A DNA stretch of 15,373 bases from Zygophlyctis sp. KS116 (lineage: Eukaryota > Fungi > Chytridiomycota), in contig BAAFSQ010000236.1 of NCBI GenBank assembly GCA_054661495.1, positions 1 through 15,373 of the forward strand, written 5' to 3'. Position numbers and translations under genes: made by a program. Under the pieces are notes generated by a model, which had not been told where the DNA came from, searched no databases, and saw only the letters and a list, made by a program, of their open reading frames with translations. This document shows, one piece after another, positions 174 through 15,373 of the stretch. The stretch's first letter is position 1; each line of letters starts with the position of its first letter.

Positions 174-195
174 GTACAAGTGCTCGATTTGAGTA

Positions 196-214
196 ACGTT
201 ATTCCGACGGTCGA
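196..214 (+). repeat. Left TIR of pogo copy 1
   Basis: ACGTTATTCCGACGGTCGA versus reverse complement of right end CCGTAATTCCGACGGTCGA. Confidence 0.85.
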
Positions 215-288
215 TATAAAAACCTTTACTTTACGAAAATAATGCACTTACCCCCTTCGCTACATCAAGAAAGTAGTGTCGTGGTTTT

Positions 289-531
289 AAACCAGATATT
301 TTTTTAAACGCAGAAGAGAAGAATGAGTATTGTGTGAACGCTTTTGAAATACGAGATGGTTTTGAATCAGGATTTATAGGCTATGTTGGTAAAGAATTCC
401 TTGCCTTTAATGGAATCTAAGAAAACAAATTGGCCCAAGTAACAAAATTATATTCCAATTCCAAAAATACTCAAGAAAGAAAGGTCTCTGCTGATAGAAA
501 AGGAGTTTCTCTTTGCACAATAATCAGTTGA
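289..531 (+). pseudogene. Second (antisense) ORF of pogo copy 1, HIRAN-like, disrupted
   Basis: Translates KPDIFLNAEEKNEYCVNAFEIRDGFESGFIGYVGKEFLAFNGI*ENKLAQVTKLYSNSKNTQERKVSADRKGVSLCTIIS*. Ungapped 43/80 identity to ORF 14864-15175. The internal TAA (418-420) aligns with Tyr, and the N-terminus (~240-288) is frameshifted. Absent from the ORF track. Confidence 0.85.
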
Positions 532-575
532 AAATATACAAATAATTAAATAATTTACTTAATAATAATTGCACT

Positions 576-1695
576 TTACTTAATAATAACCGCACTTGTG
601 GAAAATCTTTTGAATTGAATCTTCCCAGTAATTTTTTGCCTTGATATTTCTTTCAAATCATTGCTTAGCATATGTTTTACCCATGATTTTTTTAGATGGT
701 CCTTCAAGGGCTTATTAACTCCAACATCCATTGGTTGTATTCTTGAAGTAGAGCCGCCAGGCAAAACAGAGACCATACATCCAAGTAAACGAATTGCCTT
801 AATAACAGCAGCAACTGTATGCGAACTATAGTCATCCATCAAAACATCCTAGATTCTGAGAGACATATGGTTTCAGTACAAGATTAACCCTCTTTAACAT
901 AGCCTCTGAATCATTCCAAGCTGCCGATTGAAAACAGTATTTTGCATCGGGGGAATATCAATTTACAACCGTTGCCTTTTTTTCATTTGTTTGACTTAAT
1001 ACTTTAAATGATTTTTTGACCTACCTTGTTGCCCTTTGAAAATTACCAGAGACATTAACTTTTTTCCTGAAGCAGAAGAGGGTTACTTAAGTTTTTGCGC
1101 CATTAACAGTCTTTGCGCCTTTTGTGAAAACCCTACAATTAGGTCAATTGTCGTAGTAGCAAGGTGTTTCATCCATATTGATCACAGAATCAGGATGAAT
1201 ATTCATGAAATGATTGATTTCAGTTACATACGTAGCAAAATCTAAACATAATTCAACATCACATTCTTTTTGGGCAACATGTATCTTCTTGCGAATACAA
1301 AAGTTATTTCTTTGCAGATATACATACAGCCATTTCTGTATTTGAACAAAATTTGAATCTTTAAATCATGGATCAAAACTTATAATTGTATATACAATGG
1401 AATCAACTGAACATTCCTTTTGACTTTGTTCTTGTCCTTCAATATACGAGTCTATAACGTTTTCCAAGTTTTCTCCAAGTGACTTTGGTCCAGTATGAAA
1501 GGTATATTGGCCGTTTGGATAATCTACATCTAGATTGATAGTTTTTTTCCACCCAGAGAAGGTCCCTTTTGGTATGTTATATTCAGAGCACACGAGGGCT
1601 TGAGAAGTTTCCTGTGCTTTCAGGAGTAATTTTTTCTTCTCGGATAAGTCAAAATTGTAATTTCTTTTTCTTTTATGAACAGGAGTAGTTTCCAT
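576..1695 (-). pseudogene. pogo-type transposase (HTH + CENP-B-type HTH + DDE_1), fragmented
   Basis: N-terminal HTH (VCSEYNIPKGTFSGWKK), VINMDETP (MDET at 1176-1165), LVIFKG, MDDYSSH...LPGGSTSRIQPMDVGVNKPLK with 35 residues between the 2nd and 3rd Asp. Multiple stops, frameshifts and deletions. Confidence 0.9.
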
Positions 1696-1754
1696 TTCTT
1701 CTGCCGAGCGAACTCTCACAATTAAATTATTTAAAAAGGATCCGACGCGTTCGC

Positions 1755-1773
1755 TCGACCGTCGGAATTACGG
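1755..1773 (-). repeat. Right TIR of pogo copy 1
   Basis: TCGACCGTCGGAATTACGG followed by TA. The extended 28-nt end matches the copy-3 end at 14776 in 23/28 positions. Confidence 0.88.
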
Positions 1774-2399
1774 TAGCTATAAATAAGAACGAATTGTTGG
1801 GGATAATTGTCAAGTTGATCTTTATATTAGTTAAGAAACTTTTGTAACTGATTATGAAGCTGATAAGTCTATAATCGTTCTTCAACTTGGTATTCATTAG
1901 ATCGCATGCATTCTTATGTATCAAACCTATCGGAGTCATTGATCTCGTCATTCAAGGATAATTTTAGGATAAAAAATAAATAATTGAATAAGCTTACTAA
2001 AGATAAGCTTAACAATGGCGTTATCACCACCAAAACTATATTAGAAAACTAAAAAAAACTTTTAAAAAATTAAAATATGAAAAATTAAAAGAAAAATTAA
2101 TGTGAAATTTAAGATCAATTAACTTGAATGCTATGCCTCCCAAGTTTGCGGGTTAAACATCTTGCGGATCTAGTTACTTCATCATGAAAATACATGGCTG
2201 CTAATCGCTACCAATCCCCAGTTTTCTACAAGCATCCCTAACTACCTTCAATTTAATATCAGTTTCAGCTTTGAGTAAGAAAAACTGCGTGGAAAATTTT
2301 ACTCAAAACTCAGTGATCGTTGTACTTGGCGATGAAACCATATTCATCTGAACTGCTGAAAACGGGAAATAATATTTAGATGTAGGAGAAAGGAAGAAT

Positions 2400-2575
2400 T
2401 AATGATGTGACCTAGATATTTAAACCAGGTACGATAGAATGAGCATTTTTTGACGGAGAATTTTCTTACTTTTGAAAAACCATTTGGAGATGTTGCTCTT
2501 CGTTTGAATTACTAAAGACACAAATATCGTCAATATAAACGATAACAAACTGAAATAAATATGGTGCAAGGATCG
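2400..2575 (-). pseudogene. Ty3/gypsy reverse transcriptase fragment
   Basis: Minus strand reads ILAPYLFQFVIVYIDDICVFSNSNEEQHLQMVFQK (YIDD at 2537-2526), then KYLGHII (YLGH at 2418-2407) after a frameshift. This is a different frame from the listed ORF 2420-2644. Confidence 0.82.
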
Positions 2576-2579
2576 TTCG

Positions 2580-2680
2580 TGCTGCATCACATGACAAGTA
2601 TTCGATTCAACATTATGTTTAATTGACTCTTCCATATCTGGCATTGGAATTCATCGGTAAAAAAGATTGAAATATGCAAA
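2580..2680 (-). pseudogene. BED-type zinc-finger fragment (possibly hAT transposase-derived)
   Basis: AYFNLFTDEFQCQI(W/C)KSQL then, after a frameshift, KHNVESNTCHVMQH. Fits the YF...CxxC...T..l..H BED pattern; the second Cys is intact in the copy at 3128-3165. Confidence 0.45.
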
Positions 2681-3165
2681 CGATCGTCAACAATAAATAT
2701 AAATATATAAATGACAAGACACACCATTAAATCAAAATGAATTCTACTTTGGACCTTAGACTATAAGAAGATGGGTACTATCATTGTCCCCCTTCTGGCT
2801 GTGCATCCAAGGGAGTACCCAATTATAGAAACCGTCATGGAAGCATATTGAGAAAGAGCATCCGAAAATAAAGTCTGTATTTCCAAAAGAACCAAGAAAA
2901 GAAGCAGAGTTATTGACTGAAGGCAGTAATAGACTCCATAAATGTAGAGATGAGAAAGCCCAAAAGGTAAAAATATTTTCTGGTATTAGAGCTGTTGAAA
3001 TGGAATTTTAACACAGAGTGAAAACCAAGAGGTTTGCATCCGCCTGGATTGTAAATACTACCGACTTTTTGTAAAATTGATTACTTTCCTGTTAACGACT
3101 CTTCTATCCCTTACTAACCCTAAGTTTTTTAATTGACTCTTGCATATCTGGCATTGGAATTCATC
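2618..3165 (+). repeat. 38-bp direct repeat pair (2618-2655 and 3128-3165)
   Basis: TTTAATTGACTCTT(C/G)CATATCTGGCATTGGAATTCATC, 37/38 identical, 510 bp apart. Confidence 0.9.
2768..2870 (+). pseudogene. Degraded C2H2-like zinc-finger fragment
   Basis: Across frameshifts: EDGYYHCP / SGCASKG / WKHIEKEHPK. Confidence 0.3.
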
Positions 3166-3729
3166 CGAAATAATTTCTATATATTCTGATCGATATAATC
3201 GGTAAACAGTCTCTGGAAGAAGAGGTTAATTGAATTAAAATGTTTTAATTTCTTCTATTAATTTTAAATTCTTTAATAAATTTAAAATCAATATCCACTG
3301 AGTCCTAACTCTGTGAAGAAGTCTTGAATATTGACAGCATTTTATAGGTTGCCTTGTATGTTTTGTTATATTTTGGTCTTTTATCTGGCTTTACCTATAT
3401 GGATCTGTAATCGCTGTTGTAACAACACCGTGGCCTTCATTTAAGACGAAGGCACGTCGACCTTCAACTAAGAGGACTCGCCGCCCGAACTCTAATTGAA
3501 TAAAAATTCAGGGTTCGGCTAAGAATGTAGCAAGTCATTACACTTTAGTGCAGCTACTACTGCTCCAGATGATGGCGAAAACGAATCTTCAGGTGAAAAC
3601 CTAACCTTACCCTCGACTCTCTGCTCTGTTCCACTAGTCCCAGATAGGTGATTTCGTAGGTTTAAAGAAAAAATTTCCAATGAAAAGGGCAAATGCTGTG
3701 TTAGTTCTGGGTGAGTGCTGGGCAACCTT

Positions 3730-3927
3730 TGTTGGAGATTTTAGGTCAAGGCTAAGGAATCTCATATGGCGCAGATAAGTTTAATATGTGGCGTATTTTT
3801 TACAGGAATTTAGAATAGAATAAGTGACAGAAGGTTATAACAAATGAGTAGCGATAGAGTATTGAGATCAAGACAGTTGGTGTTCCTAGTCGGATACCTA
3901 GAGCTATTGGGGTTCAAATTCCTAACA
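3730..3927 (+). repeat. 5' LTR
   Basis: TGTTGGAGA...TCCTAACA; identical by eye to 8125-8322. Confidence 0.97.
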
Positions 3928-3941
3928 CGTTATCAGCACCA
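3928..3941 (+). promoter_or_regulatory. Primer-binding site complementary to the anticodon arm of tRNA-Ile
   Basis: CGTTATCAGCACCA; reverse complement TGGTG-CT-GAT-AA-CG matches the eukaryotic tRNA-Ile(AAU/IAU) anticodon stem-loop as I recall it, with G at the wobble position. It does not start with TGG, so it is not a 3'-CCA primer. Confidence 0.7.
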
Positions 3942-5510
3942 ATGGCTGAAGAAGTTGGAGAGCGTAGAAATGAAGCAAATGCTAATTTATCTAATCCAGA
4001 AGGGGCTTTTAGAGAATTGGCAAATAGGATTTCAGACGTGGAATCAAACTTAGAGGTTATGATAGAAAATCAGTTGAAGACCGCTTTACAAGGAGTAATG
4101 AGCGAGTATCTCAATAGAGAGAGAGTAATAATGCGTAATGAAGGAAATTTAACACAGAGAGGAGAAATGCTTGATGGAGAATTACGTGGAAATAATGAAG
4201 GAAATTATTCACGTACCGAGGAGACCCGAGGAAGGTCACGTGACAATTCAAGGTCACGTGGAGAAAAACGGAATTTTAAAATTCCCAAAGTTAAAATTGA
4301 ACCAAAATTAAATGGACCCTCAAACTTTAACTACTGGAGATTAATGATGGAAGGACAAATGAAAGCTACGAATATATTTTCAGCTATAAATCAAAGATTG
4401 GATGAAAATGATGAAATGAATTTAGTTGCACTTGATTTTATTGTTAGAAGTGTGGGAAATCAAATGATACCACTCGTATTGGATACTAAAACTGCATATG
4501 ATGCGTGGGATAAAATTAAAAATTATTGTGCACCAAAAAATGCTAGTGAAATTAGAAGAATTAGGAAACAACTCGCATTGAAGGAAATGGAAGGAAAGAA
4601 TATAGATGGTTACATTATGAGTTTTAAAAAATTATACTCAGAATTATGCAATCAGGGAATACTTATACAAGATGATGAATTAATTTCTTATATCTTAAAT
4701 GGTTTACCAAATGAATTAAGTACAATTGCAGCATTGGTGGAAAATCAAGCAGTAAATTTTGAAGATGCATGTTCAAAATTAAGATCTATGATCAAAGATA
4801 TGAAAGATTACACAGGAGGCAGTGATAAATATTCAGAAAAAGGATTGTTTGCACAAAATGAAAAAAATTCAAAAAATTCAAGAGGACAATCTGGAAGAGG
4901 AGGACGTGGAAGTTCAAGAGGAGGAGTAAACCAAAATCAGAAAAAATGCTACGTCTGTGGGGATAAAGGACATTTAACAAAGAATTGCAAGTACGTGAGG
5001 TGTCATAGTTGCAAAAAGGAAGGTCATACAGCAGATAAATGCACTGAAGGAAGAAATAATAAGAAAAATGAAGGACAATCTGACGATTCAGACTTCGGGT
5101 TGATGTTGCAAGAAGTTGCACTGAAAGGAGGAATGAAGGAAATAGACTGGATTTTGGATAGTGGCTGTTCATCTCATGTATGCAGGGAGAAAAATCTTTT
5201 TGTCAATTTTAAGCAGGAAAGAAGATTATTGGGACAATTGGATAAATCGAATCCAATTATATCATATGGAATCGGATCAATTAAACTACAAAGCTTAAAG
5301 TTAGATGATGTCTTATATGTACCAGATTCAGGATACAATTTAATTTCTGTTTCAAGACTAACGAAAAACAATCTAAATATCAATTTTGATGAGAATGGGG
5401 CAAAAATTGAAGGAGCGGGAATTGATCTTCATTTTATACTCAGGAACAATATATATGTCTTATCAAAGGATATGGCATTGATCAGTTTTTCAATGGATGT
5501 TTATGCATAG
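3942..5510 (+). CDS. gag: Copia Gag-protease polyprotein
   Basis: KLNGPSNFNYW copia Gag motif, ILNGLP, two CCHC knuckles (CYVCGDKGHLTKNC, CHSCKKEGHTADKC), aspartic protease WILDSGCSSH and VLYVP...NLISVS. Confidence 0.95.
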   Translation: MAEEVGERRNEANANLSNPEGAFRELANRISDVESNLEVMIENQLKTALQGVMSEYLNRERVIMRNEGNLTQRGEMLDGELRGNNEGNYSRTEETRGRSRDNSRSRGEKRNFKIPKVKIEPKLNGPSNFNYWRLMMEGQMKATNIFSAINQRLDENDEMNLVALDFIVRSVGNQMIPLVLDTKTAYDAWDKIKNYCAPKNASEIRRIRKQLALKEMEGKNIDGYIMSFKKLYSELCNQGILIQDDELISYILNGLPNELSTIAALVENQAVNFEDACSKLRSMIKDMKDYTGGSDKYSEKGLFAQNEKNSKNSRGQSGRGGRGSSRGGVNQNQKKCYVCGDKGHLTKNCKYVRCHSCKKEGHTADKCTEGRNNKKNEGQSDDSDFGLMLQEVALKGGMKEIDWILDSGCSSHVCREKNLFVNFKQERRLLGQLDKSNPIISYGIGSIKLQSLKLDDVLYVPDSGYNLISVSRLTKNNLNINFDENGAKIEGAGIDLHFILRNNIYVLSKDMALISFSMDVYA

Positions 5511-8007
5511 GAGATTTGCTCATATGAACCAAAAAATGCTAAAATTCATGTTTAAAAGGAATATGGTTGAAGGAATAGATAATTTGGAAAATGGAAAAAA
5601 TGATTTTTGTGATGTTTGTCATCTAGCAAAAATGACCAGGAAGAAATTTCAGACGAAGGGCTTAAATGATTTAAAGTGCTTAGAAATGATACATGCTGAT
5701 TTGTGTGGCCCACTACCAAATTCTTTAGGAGATAACAAATATTTTCTCTTATTTACAGACGAAAAGACAAGATTTAGATGGATATACTTTTTAAAGTTGA
5801 AAAGCCAGACTTACAAATATGCAGTGGAATTTATTAACTTGTTGAAGAATCATTTCAAAGATTGTTTTAAATTTCTTAGATCTGACGGTGGTGGAGAATT
5901 TATTTCAAACGCTTTTCAAACTTTGCTCAAGGAAAATGGGATTTTACATGAAAGGACGGTAGTATATACTCCTCAATCAAATGGAATCTCAGAAAGAGGA
6001 AACAGGATAGTTGTAAATGGAATAAGATGTTTACTGGTGGATGCTAATTTGTCTTATATCTTTTGGGCAGAAGCGGCGCAAACAGTTGTTTACATATTAA
6101 ACAGGAGCTTTACTCATGTTTTGAAGGATAAAACTCCGTATGAAGCATTATATGGAACTAAACCGAACGTTAGTAATTTGAAAATATTTGGATCAAATTG
6201 CATTTTCAAATTGCATGACGAGTTGAGAAAGAAATTGGAAGGGAAAGGCAAATATGGAATTTTTCTTGGTTATGAAGGAAACTCGATCTATAGAATTTTT
6301 GATCAGGAGAGACAATTAGTGATTCGAAGCAGAGATGTTATTTTCAAGGAGGGAGATTTTACACGGAGAGAAAATGTGGATGATCAGGACGTTATAGTGG
6401 TTAAAGATGTGGAAGATGAAGAAATTGAAATTTATGAAGGGATAGAGAATGCTTTATTTACTGTTGATGGACTACCTGAAACATATGATGAAGCAATAAA
6501 GGAAGATTCTAATTGGAAGGATGCTATGTATGATGAATTCAATAGTTTGGTTAAAAATAATACTTGGGAGTTAGTGGAGAGACCAAAAGGTAGAAAAATA
6601 ATTAAAGGAAAATGGGTTTTTGTAAAGAAATTCAACTCTACAGGAGTTTTGGAACGGTATAAAGCCAGATGGGTGGCAAAAGGATATACTCAAATAAAGG
6701 GAATTGACTATCAGAATGTTTTTTCGCCAACGGCACGAAATGTGACATTAAGAATGATGTTAAGCATTATTATTCAGAAGGGATTACATTCAAGGCATTT
6801 TGATGTTGAAACGGCTTTTTTGAATGGAATTTTGGAGGAGGAGATATATATGGAGCAGGTGATTGGATTTGAGGATGGCTCAGGAAAAGTATGCTTATTA
6901 AAAAAGGCGTTGTATGGATTGAAGCAGGCTGGAAGAGAGTGGAACAAGAGAATATCTAATTTTTGGATTAAAAGGAATTTCAAAGCTGCAATGATGGATC
7001 CATGTTTATTCCATGGATATAAAAGCGGAAAGTTAATCCTAGTTTTGGTTTATGTGGATGACTTGATTGTTGCAGTGGAAGAAAAGGAGGATTTGAAATA
7101 CTTGGAAAATGAATTAAAACAAGAATTTACTATTAAGGATTTAGGAGAATTGTCTTTTTATTTGGGATGGAAGATTGAAATTGGAAATGGAACGGCTACG
7201 ATTACACAAAATTCATATAAAAAGAAAGTATTGGAAAGATTCAAGAATTACAGATTTGGAAGAGGATTATCTCCAATATCAAAGATATTGAGAGGAGAAG
7301 AATGTGGAACTGAAGATTACCCTTTCCAGAGAATATTGGGAAGTTTAATGTACTTATCGACTTCAACAAGACCGGATTTAACTTTTTCTATATCATTCTT
7401 ATCAAGATCTATGAAAAATCCGAAGAAAGACGATGAGAGGATGTTAAATGGCGTACTGACGTATTTGGAGAATAATGGAAATTTGGGACTAAAATACAAA
7501 AAATTAGATGGTTTGACTGAAAATGAAGTGGAAGTTACATTATATTGTGATTCTGATTGGGCTGGCGACAGAACTGATTGTGCATCTACTTCTGGATACT
7601 TGTGTTTTTTAAATGGTAATTTAGTCAGTTGGAGATCAAAAAAGCAAGATAGAGCTGCTCAGAGCTCTACAGAAGCTGAGTATATTGCTCTTTATCATGG
7701 AATACAGGAGGCTGTATGGGTAAGACAATTATTGGAGGAAATGGGATTCAAACTCAAAGGAAATTGTGTGAAGATATACCAGGATAACAAAGGTGCAATT
7801 TATTTAGCAGAAAATGCTGTCTATAGTCCAAGAACTAAGCATGTTGATATAAAATATCATTTTGTTCGGCAAGCAGTAGAAAGAGGGGAAGTTAAATTGC
7901 AATATGTTTCTACCCATGATATGAAGGCAGATGGGTTAACGAAAGCAGTACATGGTAAAAGATTGAAGGAATTATTATTTGGAAATCATCAAGACAAGAA
8001 GAGTTAA
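5497..8007 (+). CDS. pol: Copia integrase-reverse transcriptase-RNase H (in the +1 frame relative to gag-PR)
   Basis: HHCC (HRRFAH...CDVC), integrase HADLCGP/RSDGGGEF/NGISER, RT FDVETAFLNG/LKKALYGLKQ/VYVDD, RNase H YCDSDWAG/SSTEAEY/YQDNKGA/ADGLTK. No internal stops. Confidence 0.96.
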   Translation: MFMHRRFAHMNQKMLKFMFKRNMVEGIDNLENGKNDFCDVCHLAKMTRKKFQTKGLNDLKCLEMIHADLCGPLPNSLGDNKYFLLFTDEKTRFRWIYFLKLKSQTYKYAVEFINLLKNHFKDCFKFLRSDGGGEFISNAFQTLLKENGILHERTVVYTPQSNGISERGNRIVVNGIRCLLVDANLSYIFWAEAAQTVVYILNRSFTHVLKDKTPYEALYGTKPNVSNLKIFGSNCIFKLHDELRKKLEGKGKYGIFLGYEGNSIYRIFDQERQLVIRSRDVIFKEGDFTRRENVDDQDVIVVKDVEDEEIEIYEGIENALFTVDGLPETYDEAIKEDSNWKDAMYDEFNSLVKNNTWELVERPKGRKIIKGKWVFVKKFNSTGVLERYKARWVAKGYTQIKGIDYQNVFSPTARNVTLRMMLSIIIQKGLHSRHFDVETAFLNGILEEEIYMEQVIGFEDGSGKVCLLKKALYGLKQAGREWNKRISNFWIKRNFKAAMMDPCLFHGYKSGKLILVLVYVDDLIVAVEEKEDLKYLENELKQEFTIKDLGELSFYLGWKIEIGNGTATITQNSYKKKVLERFKNYRFGRGLSPISKILRGEECGTEDYPFQRILGSLMYLSTSTRPDLTFSISFLSRSMKNPKKDDERMLNGVLTYLENNGNLGLKYKKLDGLTENEVEVTLYCDSDWAGDRTDCASTSGYLCFLNGNLVSWRSKKQDRAAQSSTEAEYIALYHGIQEAVWVRQLLEEMGFKLKGNCVKIYQDNKGAIYLAENAVYSPRTKHVDIKYHFVRQAVERGEVKLQYVSTHDMKADGLTKAVHGKRLKELLFGNHQDKKS

Positions 8008-8115
8008 TCAAAGAAGGACTGTCAAAGCTATTGATATTTTTCCCATTTGGCAAATTAACGATGTTATTTTGGGTTTTTTATCGATCTTTAGTGGGGCAGT
8101 ATTAAACATCTCAAC

Positions 8116-8124
8116 GAGAGGGGG
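8116..8124 (+). promoter_or_regulatory. Polypurine tract
   Basis: GAGAGGGGG directly abuts the 3' LTR. Confidence 0.9.
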
Positions 8125-8322
8125 TGTTGGAGATTTTAGGTCAAGGCTAAGGAATCTCATATGGCGCAGATAAGTTTAATATGTGGCGTATTTTTTACAG
8201 GAATTTAGAATAGAATAAGTGACAGAAGGTTATAACAAATGAGTAGCGATAGAGTATTGAGATCAAGACAGTTGGTGTTCCTAGTCGGATACCTAGAGCT
8301 ATTGGGGTTCAAATTCCTAACA
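8125..8322 (+). repeat. 3' LTR
   Basis: Identical copy of 3730-3927, followed by TSD ACCTT. Confidence 0.97.
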
Positions 8323-8479
8323 ACCTTAACAAAAAAATGGTGCTTATCTTGTGATGGGTCACCGCGGTTCATGCAGAAAAAATTTATTCATTAATATAAT
8401 ATTGCTAACGAACCGACAAAATTTCTCATGACGTAGGTTCTGTTGAGATATGTTTAGATAATCTAATTCAGGTTGCTCA

Positions 8480-8545
8480 CTAGACTACTAGATTCCTTTC
8501 AAATAATATTTATTTACCTAGACTATTAGATTCCTTTCAAATAAT
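8480..8545 (+). repeat. 28-bp direct repeat x2
   Basis: CTAGACTA(C/T)TAGATTCCTTTCAAATAAT at 8480-8507 and 8518-8545. Confidence 0.85.
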
Positions 8546-8673
8546 CTAGGTCTCGATGACGTATAACTAAACTTATGACGTTCGTGCATTATGTCCGATA
8601 CATTTGCATTTTGGGGATTCTCACTCACAGATTCCTTATCATTCTTGTGATTCAGATTCAGATCAGGTCTGGG

Positions 8674-8726
8674 TTTCAACAGGTTCAACTCTCACTTCAA
8701 TTTTTTCAACAGGTTCAACTCTCACT
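8674..8726 (+). repeat. 23-bp direct repeat x2 (30-bp period)
   Basis: TTTCAACAGGTTCAACTCTCACT at 8674-8696 and 8704-8726; partial third copy near 8732-8744. Confidence 0.85.
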
Positions 8727-8807
8727 ACCCTTTTCAACGTTCAATTTACGGAGTATTATCTTTATTCCGAACGGTCTAACCTCATAATTACGTCATTGAG
8801 AAGACAT

Positions 8808-8840
8808 GGGCGCGTTTTTCGCGACGCGTCGCTCTATAAA
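8808..8840 (+). promoter_or_regulatory. Candidate compact promoter with CGCG (MCB/E2F-like) cluster and TATAAA
   Basis: GGGCGCG-TTTTTCGCG-ACGCGT, perfect palindrome GCGACGCGTCGC (8821-8832) and TATAAA (8835-8840), ending 10 nt before ATG 8851. Confidence 0.45.
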
Positions 8841-8906
8841 TTTAATAAAAATGATGACTGTTGATCCGCAGACTCCTAAAAGACCATTAACAACTCAGTT
8901 GGAAAC

Positions 8907-8933
8907 GTAAACTTTATTTTAAATAATTCTTAG
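8907..8933 (+). other. 27-nt spliceosomal intron
   Basis: GTAAAC...TTCTTAG; removal eliminates in-frame stops and gives ETPSKKRQK. Confidence 0.8.
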
Positions 8934-8984
8934 CCCTTCAAAGAAAAGACAAAAATCTGAAATGGAAGAAATTGTCAATCAAAG

Positions 8985-9010
8985 GTATTATTGTAATTTT
9001 TACGATTTAG
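8985..9010 (+). other. 26-nt spliceosomal intron
   Basis: GTATTA...ATTTAG; removal joins the upstream exon to the frame of ORF 9012-9671. Confidence 0.8.
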
Positions 9011-9090
9011 AGTGGTTGATTGTTTGGCTATATCTCCAGAATCTGCAGATCTATGTGGGCCAGAAACCTCCTTACTTCTTAGTTCGATAG

Positions 9091-9117
9091 GTAAAATAAT
9101 TGTATTAATTTCCATAG
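9091..9117 (+). other. 27-nt spliceosomal intron (in-frame, no stop)
   Basis: GTAAAA...CCATAG, AT-rich, same size class as neighbours. Confidence 0.68.
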
Positions 9118-10037
9118 GGCAGTCTTTGGCTGTTGACCCAATAGGAATTTTGACAGTTTTACTTCCAGTGATTTCTTTTCTTATTGGATCGAACGCTTAT
9201 GTGACTGCCGATTCAAAAATGAAATGGGAAGAACCCATTATATTATTTGCGCTTTTAGTTGGGAAAAAAGGATGGCGGAAATCACCAATTCTCAAGTTAA
9301 TCTGTGACCCCCTACGAGAATTAGTTTATCAAAATCAGAATGATGGTGCGGATTATGTTTTTTTGGATGGACTGGAGGGGATGACATCGCAATTAATGAT
9401 CAATGACGGAGAAATGTTGCAGATTGCAAATGAAGCGCAATCAATTTTAATGAAGCTTTTCTCTTCAAAAGGTTTGCATATTAAGTCTAATCTCAAATTC
9501 AAATTTCTCACCAAAATTCGTGGAGCCACGATTGTTGATCATGTTGCCTTGAATTTTATCGGATGCTTACATCCTGAAAGTTGTTGGTTGATCTTGCAAA
9601 TATGGGTTTACCAACCGGAGTTGAATTATTGGATACAATTTCTCCTCAGTTTTTATTATCAATTTTCTTAACCGTCACGACCAAAACCATGACGGTCTAT
9701 TAGAAAGGCTGTACAGATTCTTAATTTCAACATTTAATGTCGAATATTCAACGATGGACACCATGAGAGATAATATATTTGACAATACTACGTTGAAAAG
9801 TTTTTTATCTTTTAAAAAATAGTTTTATATCAAAAAATCTAAGACTCACATCATGGAGAAAGCAGACAGAAAAAGGTCTATGCCCCTGATAATTTTGCAC
9901 AATGCAAATTCGATTCTATCTTTAATGAGATATCTTCTATTAGAAAGAGTTCAGATGATGAAGAGCTTATCGCAGAGTACTCAAAACTTCCTGGAATGAT
10001 TTTAAGAATAGCAGGAGTATTGCATGTACTCGATAAT

Positions 10038-10064
10038 GTATATTCTGTTCGAAATTTATAATAG
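10038..10064 (+). other. 27-nt spliceosomal intron
   Basis: GTATAT...TAATAG containing in-frame stops; removal joins LHVLDN to ALRDEI. Confidence 0.8.
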
Positions 10065-10153
10065 GCATTACGCGACGAAATCGCCCCTCCATACATTTCA
10101 GTAGAAATTTTCGAACAAGCCTATGATGTTGCCAATTTTTACTTGATGCAACG

Positions 10154-10178
10154 GTAATTTATTCTTTGAAGGTTTTAG
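10154..10178 (+). other. 25-nt spliceosomal intron
   Basis: GTAATT...TTTTAG; removal joins YLMQR to the frame of ORF 10234-10455. Confidence 0.72.
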
Positions 10179-10637
10179 GGTAATTCTTAAAACGGGGAGA
10201 TTTTTTCAGGTCGGTAAAACTGACCAGCAAGAATTGGAGGAGGTCCTTATCTGTCCTTCTTATAATGACATACTAAACGTCAAAAGAGTTCTGTATTGCC
10301 CGGGAAATTTTTTATCAAACTCAGATATAGTCAGATCTCGCAGAGTAGATGTCTGTGATATCGAGAGAATATTTAATTTGATACATTTGGCTGGATTTGG
10401 AATCCTAACGAAGACCAAAAGTGTCTCAAATCGTAATAAAGGGGTACTTTTCTAATATTAAGGAAATGATTCTAAAAATTCATCAGAAATTATCAATTCT
10501 ACTGCAGTAGGAAGAGCGCGCTTTCGTCTGTTCCGGCTGGAAAGTCATCATCTTGACGAATGTTTAACAGGCTTAGACGATGATTTATTCAACACCCTCC
10601 AGACCCAGCCCCTTGTTTAAAAATAAATTGATTTTGA

Positions 10638-11330
10638 TTAAATTTTTTGTCCAAAATGCTCTAGATTTACGATGATATTTTAATAGCTTGACTGCAAGAA
10701 GAGTCATTACCCATGCCTGTAAATCTTCCAATTTGTTTGATGAGAGCCAGCTTCTTCTTAGTAACAAAAGTTCCATTGGGGTTAATGGAGTGCTGCCATT
10801 TACTTCATGGTCAGCTCCATTAATCGCACTCAGCTGAGATGAATTTTTATATCGTGAACATTGTCTTGAATCACTTAGGGTTAGTGTCTTGAATCACCCT
10901 TTCTCCATAAATGTGGATTGCCACGATGTATTCTGCAGCCTTGATAATTTATCTGTTCTTCCAGTTTGAGACACTCGTCACTGCAATCAGAATATGGTCC
11001 AAATATCTCTTTGGCAGTAAACAATGCATTCAATGCAGAACTTAGACTTTCAACATTGTTTCCAGGAGCCATCACATTTTATAGGTTGTCCAAAAATATC
11101 ATATACTTGATGACCATCCTTTTCCTGTCCCTTTATATCATACTTGTAAGTCCGATTCTTTGCTCGGTTCACTATGGTTCAAGCCTCATGGGTCACATCT
11201 ATTTTTTTATCATTTTGTTTAAAATTATACAGAGATGGTGCTTATCTTGTGATTGTTGTGATGAACGATGCCAGTATTGTTCCAGTATGGGATATACATG
11301 GCCCAATGTAGTTCGAATTCGTGGAGCGTC
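10638..11330 (-). pseudogene. Decayed tyrosine-recombinase-like (Crypton-like) gene: N-terminal half present, catalytic core apparently deleted
   Basis: Stitched frames: DIFGQPIKCDGSW / PGNNVESLSSALNAL..GPYSDCSDEC..GCRIHRGNPHLWRKGD / GSTPLTPMELLLLRRSWLSSNKLEDLQAWVMTLLAVKL. This resembles, from memory, the region just before the first catalytic Arg in protist/fungal YR proteins. No RHRY residues are visible. Candidate 32-nt intron at 11230-11199. Confidence 0.5.
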
Positions 11331-12665
11331 TGGTACAAACGTAAACGTAGGAAGGCATATGAAATTCCATCCTTGCTGCAAGAGACAAACCAAGAAAGCA
11401 GTTATTCACCCCTCATCAATCGTCCTTTAATTGTGGATGCATTGTCAGTTGAATTAGAGGCAAGAATCTTTCTGCATTTTAAAGAAAATCCACCACAGAC
11501 TCATCCATTCCCAAGACCTGTGGAATCATTATTCGATGCCCATGTACATTTTCAGATATTCTGATCTAACGATAGAATGTAAATATAGCTGAACTGGACC
11601 ACGAACAGGAGGATGAAGTGCTTGTTGATTACCATAATGAATCAGCGCTATCTCCACCTGAATTAGGTTTCCAAAGAGATTAATTTTCGTACTGTTTACT
11701 GAACAGAATGTTTGGCTATGTGATCAAATAAAGAAAGTTACAATTGGTGCTAAGATTAACATTGCAAGAGAAAGATTATTAAAGTCAATAAATTAATAAC
11801 CAATCTTTTCTATATGGTAATAATTTAAAATCTATAACTCAAAGAACAAGGATGAATTCTAAGTTCACCAAGTTGTAAAACATATTTTTTCTTTTATAAT
11901 TTTTCTTTCCTTTTTTTGAGAAATTTTACATATAGATCAATTTCAAACAATTTACTGCATGCCAATACAACTACACACACACAAATTTTAAGCACTAATA
12001 TTGCCCTAAAATATTAAGTCTGGATGAAATAAAAAATCTTAAAGAAAAAAAGGAAAATTATAAATTATATACAATTGCTGAAGAGGCTCTGTATTCTAAT
12101 TAAAAAACATGTACTTAGTTGTATTTTGAAAATTGACAATCCTCCTGGTTATGCACTTAGAGTTATATTTCATTTCCAGTCTCCGAAATGTATTTCAACC
12201 CATGTTCATAATTGATACAGGCGTAACGGTCTCGTTTGTCAAACCTCTAAACGAAACCACTACCTCTGTCACCTTCGCCGATTTTTCTCAAGCTCTAGCT
12301 ATAACCAACTCACAAATGCTAAGAATTTTAGCGTCCTTGATTATCTACACTCTTTACATCAATAAAAAATCTACCCTAATTATCAGTACAAAACGACATT
12401 TACCTGGAAAAATCAACGATCTAGGTTTTTTGGTGCTCCTTTTGGCCTCAAACCACTAACTGAATTTATTCGGCACAATCAATACGAGATTTTTCCAAAG
12501 CATTAACTTACATATTTCTCCAGAAGCACAAGAATCCAATGCTCTTAGGATCGATACAAAAGTTGGATTTAACCTAACCTCCCCTTCTTTTACTACCGTA
12601 TTTCGCGGAATATAGGAGGTTTTTAATATAAGAGGGTTTTGTATTTATTTATATTTTTACGATTT

Positions 12666-13001
12666 ATGATATCTCTTGATTTTAAAAGCATAGAAATTGT
12701 TGGGACTCGTCAAGGAAATAATGGCAGAATGTGTGGTTATCACCCTTCAGGTTGTGGAGCATCATTAGATGTAGGAACAAACTTAATCCTACGCAATGCA
12801 ACTATTCAAGTCCCAATAGAAACACAGATTCCAGTATCAGTGGATGAGGAAATGCCAATAAAAACTAAAAAGCGAGGAAGGCCTAATAAAGTTGTTCAGC
12901 AGTACCGTACAGAAATGGTTATGACCGATATAGCTACGATAAAAGCCTTTGTATGGAAGAATGGCATAGAATCTTGTTGTGTCGGTTTTGTTTCGTCATG
13001 A
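12666..13001 (+). pseudogene. Second (antisense) ORF of pogo copy 2, HIRAN-like with Cys/His cluster and AT-hook-like insert; TGA probably premature
   Basis: IEIVG..GRMCGYHPSGCGASLDVGTNLILR..KKRGRPNK..IKAFVWKNGIESCCVGFVS aligns with VNAFEIRDGFESGFIGYVG of copy 1. The frame continues after TGA as FQKIYENSLEGRVLNVRRIL (cf. YEFKLAQVVKLY) to ~13065. Confidence 0.65.
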
Positions 13002-13071
13002 TTTCAAAAAATATATGAAAATAGTTTAGAAGGAAGGGTATTAAATGTTCGCAGAATACTTGATAATTCAG

Positions 13072-13770
13072 GCAGGGAATACTTTCCCATGAATTGGCTA
13101 TCCATCGCCCCATTAACTCTCTGGTAACTTTGCCGTTAATATTATCAATCATAAATCGATTATAATGTGCTTTCATATAATCCTTAAAGGGCTTGTTTAT
13201 TCCGACATCTAAAACCTGCAACCTACTCGTCATATTAGGAGGGAGATAAAGTTGTGCCCAACCACAATCGGACAACTCCTTTCTGACTGAAGAAATTAAA
13301 TGAGCAGAAAAATTATCCATCATAAGCAATGCTGGACGCTTGGTATTATGCACAGGCTTCAGACATTTTTGAATCCAAAACAACATCATATCCCGGTCAC
13401 AATATCCTTTTTCTTGCGTTTGATATTCATTTCTTGGATCCAAATCACTTAAAGACTTACTAACCGTCCCATTTTTTTTCCCTTTAAAAACAACCAAGGG
13501 CTTGAGTTTTGTACCATCAAGTGCCACAGCCAAAAAAACAGTACAATGAGCAGGATTTCCTGTAGATCTAACAGCCACATGCTTTGCACCTTTGGTATTT
13601 ACAGTCGTATTAGAAGTCATATCAAAGTCTAAACCAGTTTCATCCATATTTACAATTAAATTGAAAGGTATATCATGGAAATCTTTAAGTCTTTGAAAAT
13701 GCACAACAAAGTCTAAATGAATTGCACCCATTTCGTGCTCTGCAAGGCGAGTTTGGTCGTGTGTCTTTCT
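13072..13770 (-). pseudogene. pogo-type transposase DDE_1 domain (DD35D) lacking DNA-binding N-terminus
   Basis: RKTH, IVNMDETG, DGTKLKPLVVFKG, LMMDNFSAH...LPPNMTSRLQVLDVGINKPFKD (35 aa spacing), WIANSW. Confidence 0.93.
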
Positions 13771-13779
13771 TCCAAAACT

Positions 13780-14745
13780 CTTCTTTTGCTCAAAAATATT
13801 TCTAATATGTCTTTTTTGTTGATTGATAAAATTCTTTTCTCTATTTACCATTGCTATTTGAATTTTTCTCTTTCCACCTAACCCTTTTTGCCAACTGTTT
13901 TCTCAATGATCTTAATATATTTCTGTATCGTTCCTATTGATGCATCTTCTTGGTTCATATTATGAATTGATTCACTTAATTGAAATGTAGTTTAAGGTTC
14001 ATATAGCAATGTCATTTTTTTCTCAACTGGGACGTTGTTCTGATGGATCTCAAAGATTTTCTTAAATGTTTTATAGTGTGATTTCCTATATTTTTTTATT
14101 TTATCTTTTACTACAAAGTCACTAATGATGCCTTTATCAAACACTGGAAAAGCTGCATCCAAGATATTCTTGTTGACGATATTGTAACCTAAAAAAATGT
14201 TATATTTTTTCTGTTGTATTTGGTGGAACCAGTTCTGTCTAGAATTCGGACACTCATTTAGATCACCCTGAATTATTATTTGTGGATTATTTATTTCTTT
14301 TTCGAATACATATTAATGAAGTTTTTAATAGTATTTATTATTTTCTTATAATTGTTATTTGATCTAGATGGGGAATAAACAGTAATATATATTAAAAAGT
14401 TTTTGTTTATTTTGGATTTGATTGCTATTGCATGTCCAGATAGCCTTTTAATGTTAGTTATATATTTCTTTAGATCTTCTTTGATTAGAATCATACATCC
14501 TTTCCCCAAGGATTGATGATCTCCATATTTGTTATCTGATAAGATTATATATTTTTTTTGAGATTCCTTGAGAATGTGATCCATAGCATATTTATTTTTT
14601 AAGTTTGTGTTAAGATGTGTTTCACTGAGACTATCAAGTTGGGCCTGGTTAATGTAGTAGAGTAGTTTATTTTGGCGGACTACTTAGGGTTATTTAATCT
14701 TGAATATTCTGGTGGACAAAGTTCAGGGTAGTGTTTCCATTGATT
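13780..14745 (-). mobile_element. Decayed non-LTR retrotransposon (LINE) fragment: APE endonuclease and pre-RT region
   Basis: APE motifs in order on the minus strand: QNIQ, LSETH, GKGCMILI, VYSPS, IIQGDLN, followed by A-rich Lys/Ile-rich coding remnants. RT absent. Confidence 0.8.
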
Positions 14746-14863
14746 GTATGTATTAATTTATTAGATATTGATCTACCGTAATTCAGAGAATGGAGCGAAC
14801 GCGGTTTGTCTAACGAACTCCACTAAAAAAAGTTTCCCCTAAAAAATTGTCAACATAAATTAA

Positions 14864-15175
14864 ATGAAAATTTTACTAGTCAGTCTCCACAATAATGAAA
14901 CAGAACTCAAAGCTGACGATACTGTTTATCTGAAACCCGGTGTTTTTCTTAATGATGATAACAAGAATCAATATTGTTTGCGAGCTCTTAAGATGGTTCA
15001 GGGAGTAGAAGCAGACGTAGCTGGATATGTCGCACAGGAATTTCTTACTTTTAGCAAATGCTATGAATTTAAACTAGCTCAAGTAGTCAAGTTATATTCT
15101 AAATCTAAAAATAAGCAAGAAAAAAATGTTTCGGCCGAGAGAGAAGGTGTTTGCGTTTGTAAAATCAGAAGTTAA
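14864..15175 (+). CDS. Intact 103-aa second ORF of pogo copy 3, HIRAN-like
   Basis: ATG-to-TAA open frame, homologous to 289-531 with many synonymous differences (e.g. TTG/CTA, GCC/GCT, AAA/AAG, TCC/TCT). The pattern L..DD.V.L.P....N.Y.L.A......AGYVA resembles HIRAN. Confidence 0.8.
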   Translation: MKILLVSLHNNETELKADDTVYLKPGVFLNDDNKNQYCLRALKMVQGVEADVAGYVAQEFLTFSKCYEFKLAQVVKLYSKSKNKQEKNVSAEREGVCVCKIRS

Positions 15176-15184
15176 AGAGTTTTA

Positions 15185-15373
15185 TTCATTGTTTTTGCGC
15201 CTGCAATAGTTTTGCAACCTTTTGAGACAAACTTTTTATTATTGATAATTTTTTAAATAGACAGGCGTTTCATCCATATTTATAATAGAATCCGGGGATA
15301 TTAAAAATGTCTCATTCACTTCATTAACATAATCAACAAAGTCACAACAAGTTTCCAAGTCGCATGACTTCTG
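15185..15373 (-). pseudogene. pogo transposase fragment (first catalytic Asp region)
   Basis: QKSCDLETCCDFVDYV...PDSIINMDETPVY (MDET at 15277-15266), then frameshifted SKGCKTIAGAKT (copy 1: TKGAKTVNGAKT). The rest of the DDE domain is missing. Confidence 0.88.

Follow-up and report, generated by a model that had tools for sequence, protein, structure and literature searches.

A probable HIRAN-fold accessory gene travels with the transposase of Passer-type pogo elements in the chytrid Zygophlyctis sp. KS116

We analyzed the whole of contig C236 (BAAFSQ010000236.1; 15,373 bases, ~34% GC; hereafter the window) of the 12.7-Mb, 1,175-contig assembly of Zygophlyctis sp. KS116. The contig is packed with mobile elements, among them three pogo transposon copies in which a small accessory open reading frame (ORF) lies tail-to-tail with the transposase gene; all three are decayed and none is intact. 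With high confidence, we regard them as dead copies of a Passer-type pogo clade with a long-inherited, selected accessory gene. We are just as confident that the autonomous form of this clade measures 1.7-2.6 kb and reads TA, terminal inverted repeat (TIR), small gene (+), transposase (-), TIR, TA. Judging from predicted structures, the accessory product is in all probability a HIRAN homologue, a stand-alone divergent beta-barrel to which a Cys3-His metal site has been added in most members. Full-text literature searches (most subscription journals, Repbase and Dfam not covered) returned no description of a pairing between HIRAN and a eukaryotic transposon, and the two-gene HIRAN/pogo pairing is real, general and apparently undescribed.

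A reading of the window made from its letters alone (the sequence-only reading) had proposed a long-maintained accessory gene, and this proposal is borne out by linkage, by selection and by the co-divergence of the ORF with the transposase. We checked the two outcomes that it had named as refuting, one concerning the fold and the other the accessory gene, and neither was observed. We examined the neighborhoods of 13 distinct outside homologues, picked for their longer contigs, and found a pogo transposase tail-to-tail with the ORF in 13/13. Six outside elements have both ends, each with TA followed by CCGTA, enclosing only the two genes. In two families (L031-L034 and L035-L038) the same two-gene element occurs at several different flanks; therefore, both genes move as one unit. 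In the genome of Zygophlyctis itself, all ORF matches (9/9) adjoin transposase pieces in the same tail-to-tail orientation, and own-genome searches found no unlinked host copy of the ORF. Transposase pieces without the ORF are present on C383, C615, C653 and other contigs; since they have no TIR at that end, they are fragments rather than counter-examples. One metagenome locus scan, made with a narrow alignment, returned 3 loci, and the converse look-up, starting from transposases, comprised two.

A complete two-gene element with both TIRs is found in Plasmodiophora brassicae (L179:2706-4950, OVEO01000017.1); its accessory ORF, which matches the family with E 2e-22, is absent from the called genes of the record. 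A more distant element, L180:1041-5840 (ENA ERZ25069853), is a canonical Passer with HTH_Tnp_Tc5 and DDE_1. The ORF family of our clade is not present in the L180 element; inside its TIRs stands an intact canonical HIRAN gene of 118 amino acids (aa) (2105-2461, -), upstream of and divergent from the transposase. This gene belongs to another subfamily, reaches the Pfam HIRAN cut-off, scores 0.95 in the language-model Atlas and has an aromatic GYH motif. L180 is one locus, but the support that it lends is independent of structure prediction. The Atlas cluster nearest to the L180 HIRAN is rich in sponges, which suggests that the stand-alone HIRAN proteins of animals could be encoded by Passers. 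The position of the genes bears on one alternative, namely that the small protein is a sequence-specific DNA- or RNA-binding protein controlling element expression through the TIR, sub-terminal DNA or, where the convergent transcripts overlap, their 3' ends. Such a protein would suit the constant tail-to-tail layout with its short gaps between the two stop codons, as well as an OB-like barrel and co-divergence with the element family; however, the divergent, upstream gene of L180 shows that convergence is not universal, and we consider this alternative quite unlikely.

The features of the three local elements, and of a repeat that interrupts them, are the following (window coordinates, strand, evidence).
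194-214 (+): element 1 left end, TA at 194-195 and degenerate TIR at 196-214; inverted repeat with 1755-1775, 90% complementary.
286-531 (+): remnant of the element 1 accessory ORF (ORF1; predicted HIRAN fold); 43/80 codons identical to ORF3, family profile E 5e-24, left-end alignment.
576-1695 (-): element 1 pogo transposase; DDE_1 E 5e-9, translations, transposase profile.
1755-1775 (-): element 1 right TIR at 1755-1773 and TA at 1774-1775; the motif is found at 11 places in the genome.
12594-12620 (+): element 2 left end, TA at 12594 and TIR of another family; related end on contig C747.
12666-13073 (+): element 2 accessory ORF (ORF2), zinc-loop subtype; family profile built without ORF2, E 3e-13 to 7e-13, and own-genome search.
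13072-13772 (-): catalytic half of the element 2 pogo transposase; DDE_1 E 5e-22, DD35D with a spacing of 35.
13773-14775 (-): multi-copy fragment resembling a long interspersed nuclear element (LINE), separate from the pogo elements; loose ends at 13773 and 14775, many variant contigs, other copies.
14774-14794 (+): element 3 left end, TA at 14774 and a TIR related to that of element 1; 84% complementary to 1746-1776 over 31 nt.
14864-15175 (+): element 3 accessory ORF (ORF3), 103 aa, open, loop-less subtype; AlphaFold2 model with a predicted local distance difference test score (pLDDT) of 94.6, HIRAN structures at Z 8.4/7.6/6.0.
15230-15373 (-): piece of the element 3 transposase that includes the first catalytic Asp; transposase profile E 4e-9, translation.

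The layout that the sequence-only reading had ascribed to all three elements is confirmed, with qualifications: TA and TIR, ORF (+) and transposase (-) are present in each, but both TIRs are found in element 1 only and DD35D can be counted only in elements 1 and 2. Likewise, the ORF was rightly placed on the opposite strand, converging on the transposase, but it is not an overlapping antisense gene, the two frames being separate. In element 1, the 5' part of the ORF is deleted and a TAA lies at 418-420 (left-end alignment); the transposase has stops and frameshifts, yet its DD35D is still countable. ORF2 has a basic insertion of ~30 aa, a TGA at 12999-13001 and no C-terminal end. ORF3 has an open frame but has lost three conserved residues (G>S, E>Q and R>Q) and is probably decaying. 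The C-terminal half of the element 3 transposase is deleted and the contig ends there, so that DD35D cannot be counted. Elsewhere in the genome, L019:845-1227 (G000:C159) is a 380-bp internally deleted derivative with both TIRs and scraps of both genes.

Element 2 could be followed further in contigs from other samples, which we compared with the window; the sequencing runs matching it come from DNA sampled in freshwater and estuaries. In run X3, one contig contains 12589-12620, the element 2 left end, beside another flank. An X3 contig is also longer by ~108 letters at 13071, where the ends of the two genes meet; judged from record coordinates, these bases, apparently lacking in element 2, would fit the missing ends of both genes. 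An end of element 2 near 13775 had been called from the letters alone; other-sample contigs indeed break at 13773, where the separate repeat begins, and stop again at 14775, with many variant copies in between. This LINE-like fragment replaces the 5' half of the element 2 transposase and the right TIR, and element 2 stops at ~13773. The fragment has APE-endonuclease-like motifs by eye, and a Pfam search with it gave no hit. In one X3 contig the match to it stops at 14110 and TTTTGGGG repeats follow, which may be the telomere repeat of the host.

The accessory ORF belongs to a family of proteins of ~105-130 aa; sequence searches brought together about 60 relatives, mostly of 100-170 aa, two of them from Spongospora subterranea. 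For ORF2, the queries were the sequence up to the stop, except in one analysis that used the read-through with X at the stop. The profile built without ORF2 recovers it, in agreement with the earlier view of copy 2 as a more distant relative beside a different TIR. Neither ORF2, ORF3 nor the family had a match in Pfam or PDB sequence searches, and an Atlas search with ORF3 gave a best score of only 0.78 and nothing informative; by shape, the closest Atlas cluster has few labelled members, diatoms among them. Short-pattern scans of viral contigs and prokaryotic genomes turned up no relatives, a result from which true absence does not follow. A further candidate, P0015, was rejected as a chance hit (cadherin/Ig repeats).

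In most members, strand 1 is followed by a Cys-x2-His-x2-Cys loop and a further Cys lies distally; the two are jointly present in 44 sequences and jointly absent in 16. Because the loop and the distal Cys are present or absent together, they likely form a four-ligand metal (putatively zinc) site, although 15/16 of the losses probably trace to one event. The loop is missing from ORF1 and ORF3 (the loop-less subtype) and retained in ORF2. Across the family, glycines are invariant, R20, R74 and E52 are conserved and the C-terminal helix is basic; R20, R74, E52 and this helix would fit a nucleic-acid surface. The missing Pfam match could suggest that the ORF is captured junk or a shadow frame without protein function. 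Such a view is refuted, and we give it almost no credence, in the face of the purifying selection described below, a confident fold, the invariant glycines, co-occurring putative metal ligands (44/44) and a frame that does not overlap that of the transposase.

ORF1 and ORF3 have identical residues at 43/80 codons without gaps, a count on which our own and the sequence-only reading agree, together with many synonymous differences (synonymous divergence, dS, ~1.6; nonsynonymous divergence, dN, 0.33). Between families, where dS can be measured but approaches saturation, the pairwise dN/dS of the ORF is 0.15-0.49; in the two within-family pairs it is 0.77-0.82. These values indicate that the ORF is selected during transposition and that copies decay after insertion, the usual transposon pattern. 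They also bear on the notion that the gene is host-benefit cargo (e.g. for DNA-damage tolerance), passively carried and without a role in transposition. HIRAN is a repair-associated domain, as such cargo might be; however, every own-genome copy is decayed, dN/dS within families is ~0.8, no unlinked host copy was found and the host already has a Rad5-type HIRAN gene. This notion is largely refuted and we hold it to be very improbable. That host gene (L043, G000:C7:64591-67848), which has its own HIRAN domain, has as neighbors an rps12 gene of bacterial type and a C-terminus resembling that of cullins.

The distances of ORF and transposase co-vary across 18 elements (Mantel test, Spearman 0.74, P 1e-4), and their trees share 7/15 splits versus 0.28 expected by shuffling. 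Some supported splits disagree between the trees within the loop-less group, where exchange now and then, or poor resolution, is possible. Shared ancestry contributes to this test, and the correlation shows co-inheritance, not interaction.

The HIRAN-like fold, originally suggested from the letters alone, was recovered by structure prediction. The AlphaFold2 models, one of ORF3 and one of a member with the loop, reached pLDDT values of 94.6 and 90.9, respectively. When 48,161 chains were searched with two independent models, ranks 1-3 were taken by HIRAN structures, namely lp_0118, HLTF HIRAN and K. lactis Rad5, with Z scores of 8.4, 7.6 and 6.0 and root-mean-square deviations of 2.5-3.6 over ~80 residues; the next hit was an OB fold (Z 5.3). 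The Lactobacillus protein lp_0118 itself matches our HIRAN profile (E 3e-18). Foldseek placed HLTF HIRAN first or next to first (probability 0.97-1.0, TM ~0.45-0.54), and an Atlas structural match led to a HIRAN cluster (TM 0.55). The host Rad5 HIRAN is too divergent to serve as a bridge to HLTF, and bacterial HIRANs were used instead; the resulting profile alignment is weak but motif-for-motif (P 0.002-0.012), pairing IVGL, AIK and VGFxPR of the family with VAG, AI and LGYIPR of HIRAN. The predicted six-stranded barrel with helices agrees with solved HIRAN structures.

HLTF HIRAN grips a DNA 3' end via D94, Y72 and Y93: the two tyrosines stack and D94 binds the 3'-OH (PMC5773155, PMC4666394). 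We mapped these pocket residues onto the family by motif-anchored sequence alignment rather than by coordinate superposition. HLTF G69, A97 and G109 are retained, K113 is mostly Arg and H110 mostly Phe; conserved Arg residues of the family align with the HIRAN binding face.

Several observations weigh against a HIRAN homologue that binds DNA ends, some against the fold, others against the function or its generality. Z scores of 6-8 are also reached by common folds, the Foldseek E values are not significant (best 0.059, ~0.06-0.1), and the Pfam HIRAN model (PF08797) matched 0/52 family members. Equivalents of HLTF Y72, Y73, Y93 and N91 are not conserved; a near-invariant Glu (55/60) sits one residue past the D94 position; the N-P-Y-D loop has no counterpart, a long hairpin standing in its place; and the median isoelectric point (pI) of the family, 6.9, is not strongly basic. 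Moreover, the metal loop sits after strand 1, where HLTF has Y72 and Y73. Because the Tyr clamp is not conserved and the metal loop occupies its region, the binding face appears remodelled; this weakens the case for HLTF-like 3'-OH end binding, which should not be assumed. The sample gathered from the transposase side is limited to two loci, and fish Passer transposases are active in human cells with TIRs alone (PMC9976928). Since these transposases function by themselves (PMC9976928), it is unlikely that such elements generally require the accessory gene.

A HIRAN-fold protein without end binding could instead be a protein-level regulator, either a cofactor or inhibitor of the transposase, or an adaptor or decoy for host factors such as Rad5/HLTF partners or the silencing machinery. 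The absent aromatic clamp, the new Cys3-His site, the neutral median pI and the strict co-inheritance with the cognate transposase speak for this view, but the canonical HIRAN with its aromatic GYH motif in another Passer points to a nucleic-acid function as the retained trait, and conserved Arg residues align with the HIRAN binding face. We consider this view rather unlikely.

We put at close to an even chance that the accessory protein acts on DNA ends made by transposition. When an element is excised in the Tc1/mariner manner, its ends carry 3'-OH groups and the donor site is left with a double-strand break. The HIRAN-fold protein would bind DNA ends or short single-stranded tails arising from cut-and-paste, its targets being the 3' ends of the excised element or the donor-site break. 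Once bound, it might protect the ends or steer repair to sister-chromatid copying, whereby the donor copy would be restored and the net copy gain of the element raised. In such a scheme, it would be a helper and not an obligatory subunit. A wider reading, which we hold to be less likely than not, is that Passer-type pogo transposons throughout the eukaryotes commonly carry a stand-alone HIRAN gene as a second gene that has been overlooked. It would come in two forms or more (zinc-loop in protists, canonical in animal-type elements) and would let an element act on its own broken ends or replication forks and so couple cut-and-paste to fork repair.

The copy gain of such elements depends on replication timing and donor-site repair, usually credited to host factors; our results suggest that elements may bring their own helper for the breaks they make. 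Because an element-encoded HIRAN-fold protein can be removed or supplied as one small gene, the question of copy gain becomes testable. The standard description of pogo/Passer elements changes, many stand-alone eukaryotic HIRAN proteins are suggested to be transposon genes, and the finding is relevant to Passer as a gene-transfer vector, now used without a helper.

The remainder of the window holds further mobile elements. At 3730-8322 (+) lies a copia-type retrotransposon with two identical 198-bp long terminal repeats and long, open frames (gag-protease 3942-5510, integrase-reverse transcriptase-RNase H 5497-8007), by its appearance very young. The region 2330-3330 (-) holds a decayed gypsy-like reverse transcriptase fragment with the motif YIDDICVFS, and a direct repeat of 46 bp stands at 2618 and 3128. 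A broken ORF at 9012-10160 (+) matches DUF3987 weakly (E 6e-5) and has a motif resembling Walker A; it is possibly a relic helicase/primase from another mobile element.

PIF/Harbinger elements are likewise two-gene DNA transposons, with a transposase and a separate small nucleic-acid-binding partner, and in this resemble ours. They belong to another superfamily, and for transposition they depend on their partner, a Myb/SANT protein, unlike the situation in the partner-free fish Passers. Within the IS630-Tc1-mariner group, the ciliate TBE/Tec elements also have extra conserved ORFs inside their TIRs, one of them in the complement in Tec, but they are DD34E, restricted to ciliates, and instead of HIRAN their extra genes encode a zinc-finger protein, a recombinase or an unknown ORF (PMC7325037). 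With HIRAN proper (PF08797; HLTF, Rad5, lp_0118), the accessory family shares the barrel, the order of its elements, the strand-1 Gly, the Ala-Ile strand and the G-aromatic-x-x-basic motif. It differs in lacking a Pfam match and the Tyr clamp, in a long hairpin for the N-P-Y-D loop, in the added Cys-x2-His-x2-Cys loop and distal Cys, and in being encoded inside a eukaryotic transposon.

As to the transposase, the DDE_1 (PF03184) catalytic domain with its DDD triad is present in elements 1 and 2, while element 3 retains only the region of the first Asp; the DD35D spacing is 35 in 7/7 transposases counted, and also in element 1. The TIRs begin with CCGTA as in the Passer supplement (PMC9976928), the left end of element 1 being degenerate. 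BrkDBD was above the cut-off in L032 only and HTH_Tnp_Tc5 was undetected in six clade transposases. By DD35D, TA and CCGTA ends, the elements fit Passer, an assignment set by features and not by a reference tree; Fot is also DD35D, but its targets are mostly TAA and its TIRs are longer (PMC7386202). Passer has been described as single-ORF (PMC9976928), and pogo as having one or two transposase ORFs (PMC7386202). Our elements are like Passer in DD35D, TA duplication, short CCGTA TIRs, their occurrence in animals and chromists and, in a relative, perhaps a BrkDBD-like N-terminal helix-turn-helix (PMC7386202, PMC9976928). They differ in that every complete element of this clade examined carries a second, unrelated gene, so that the single-ORF description does not hold for them: these elements are a variant, not textbook Passer.

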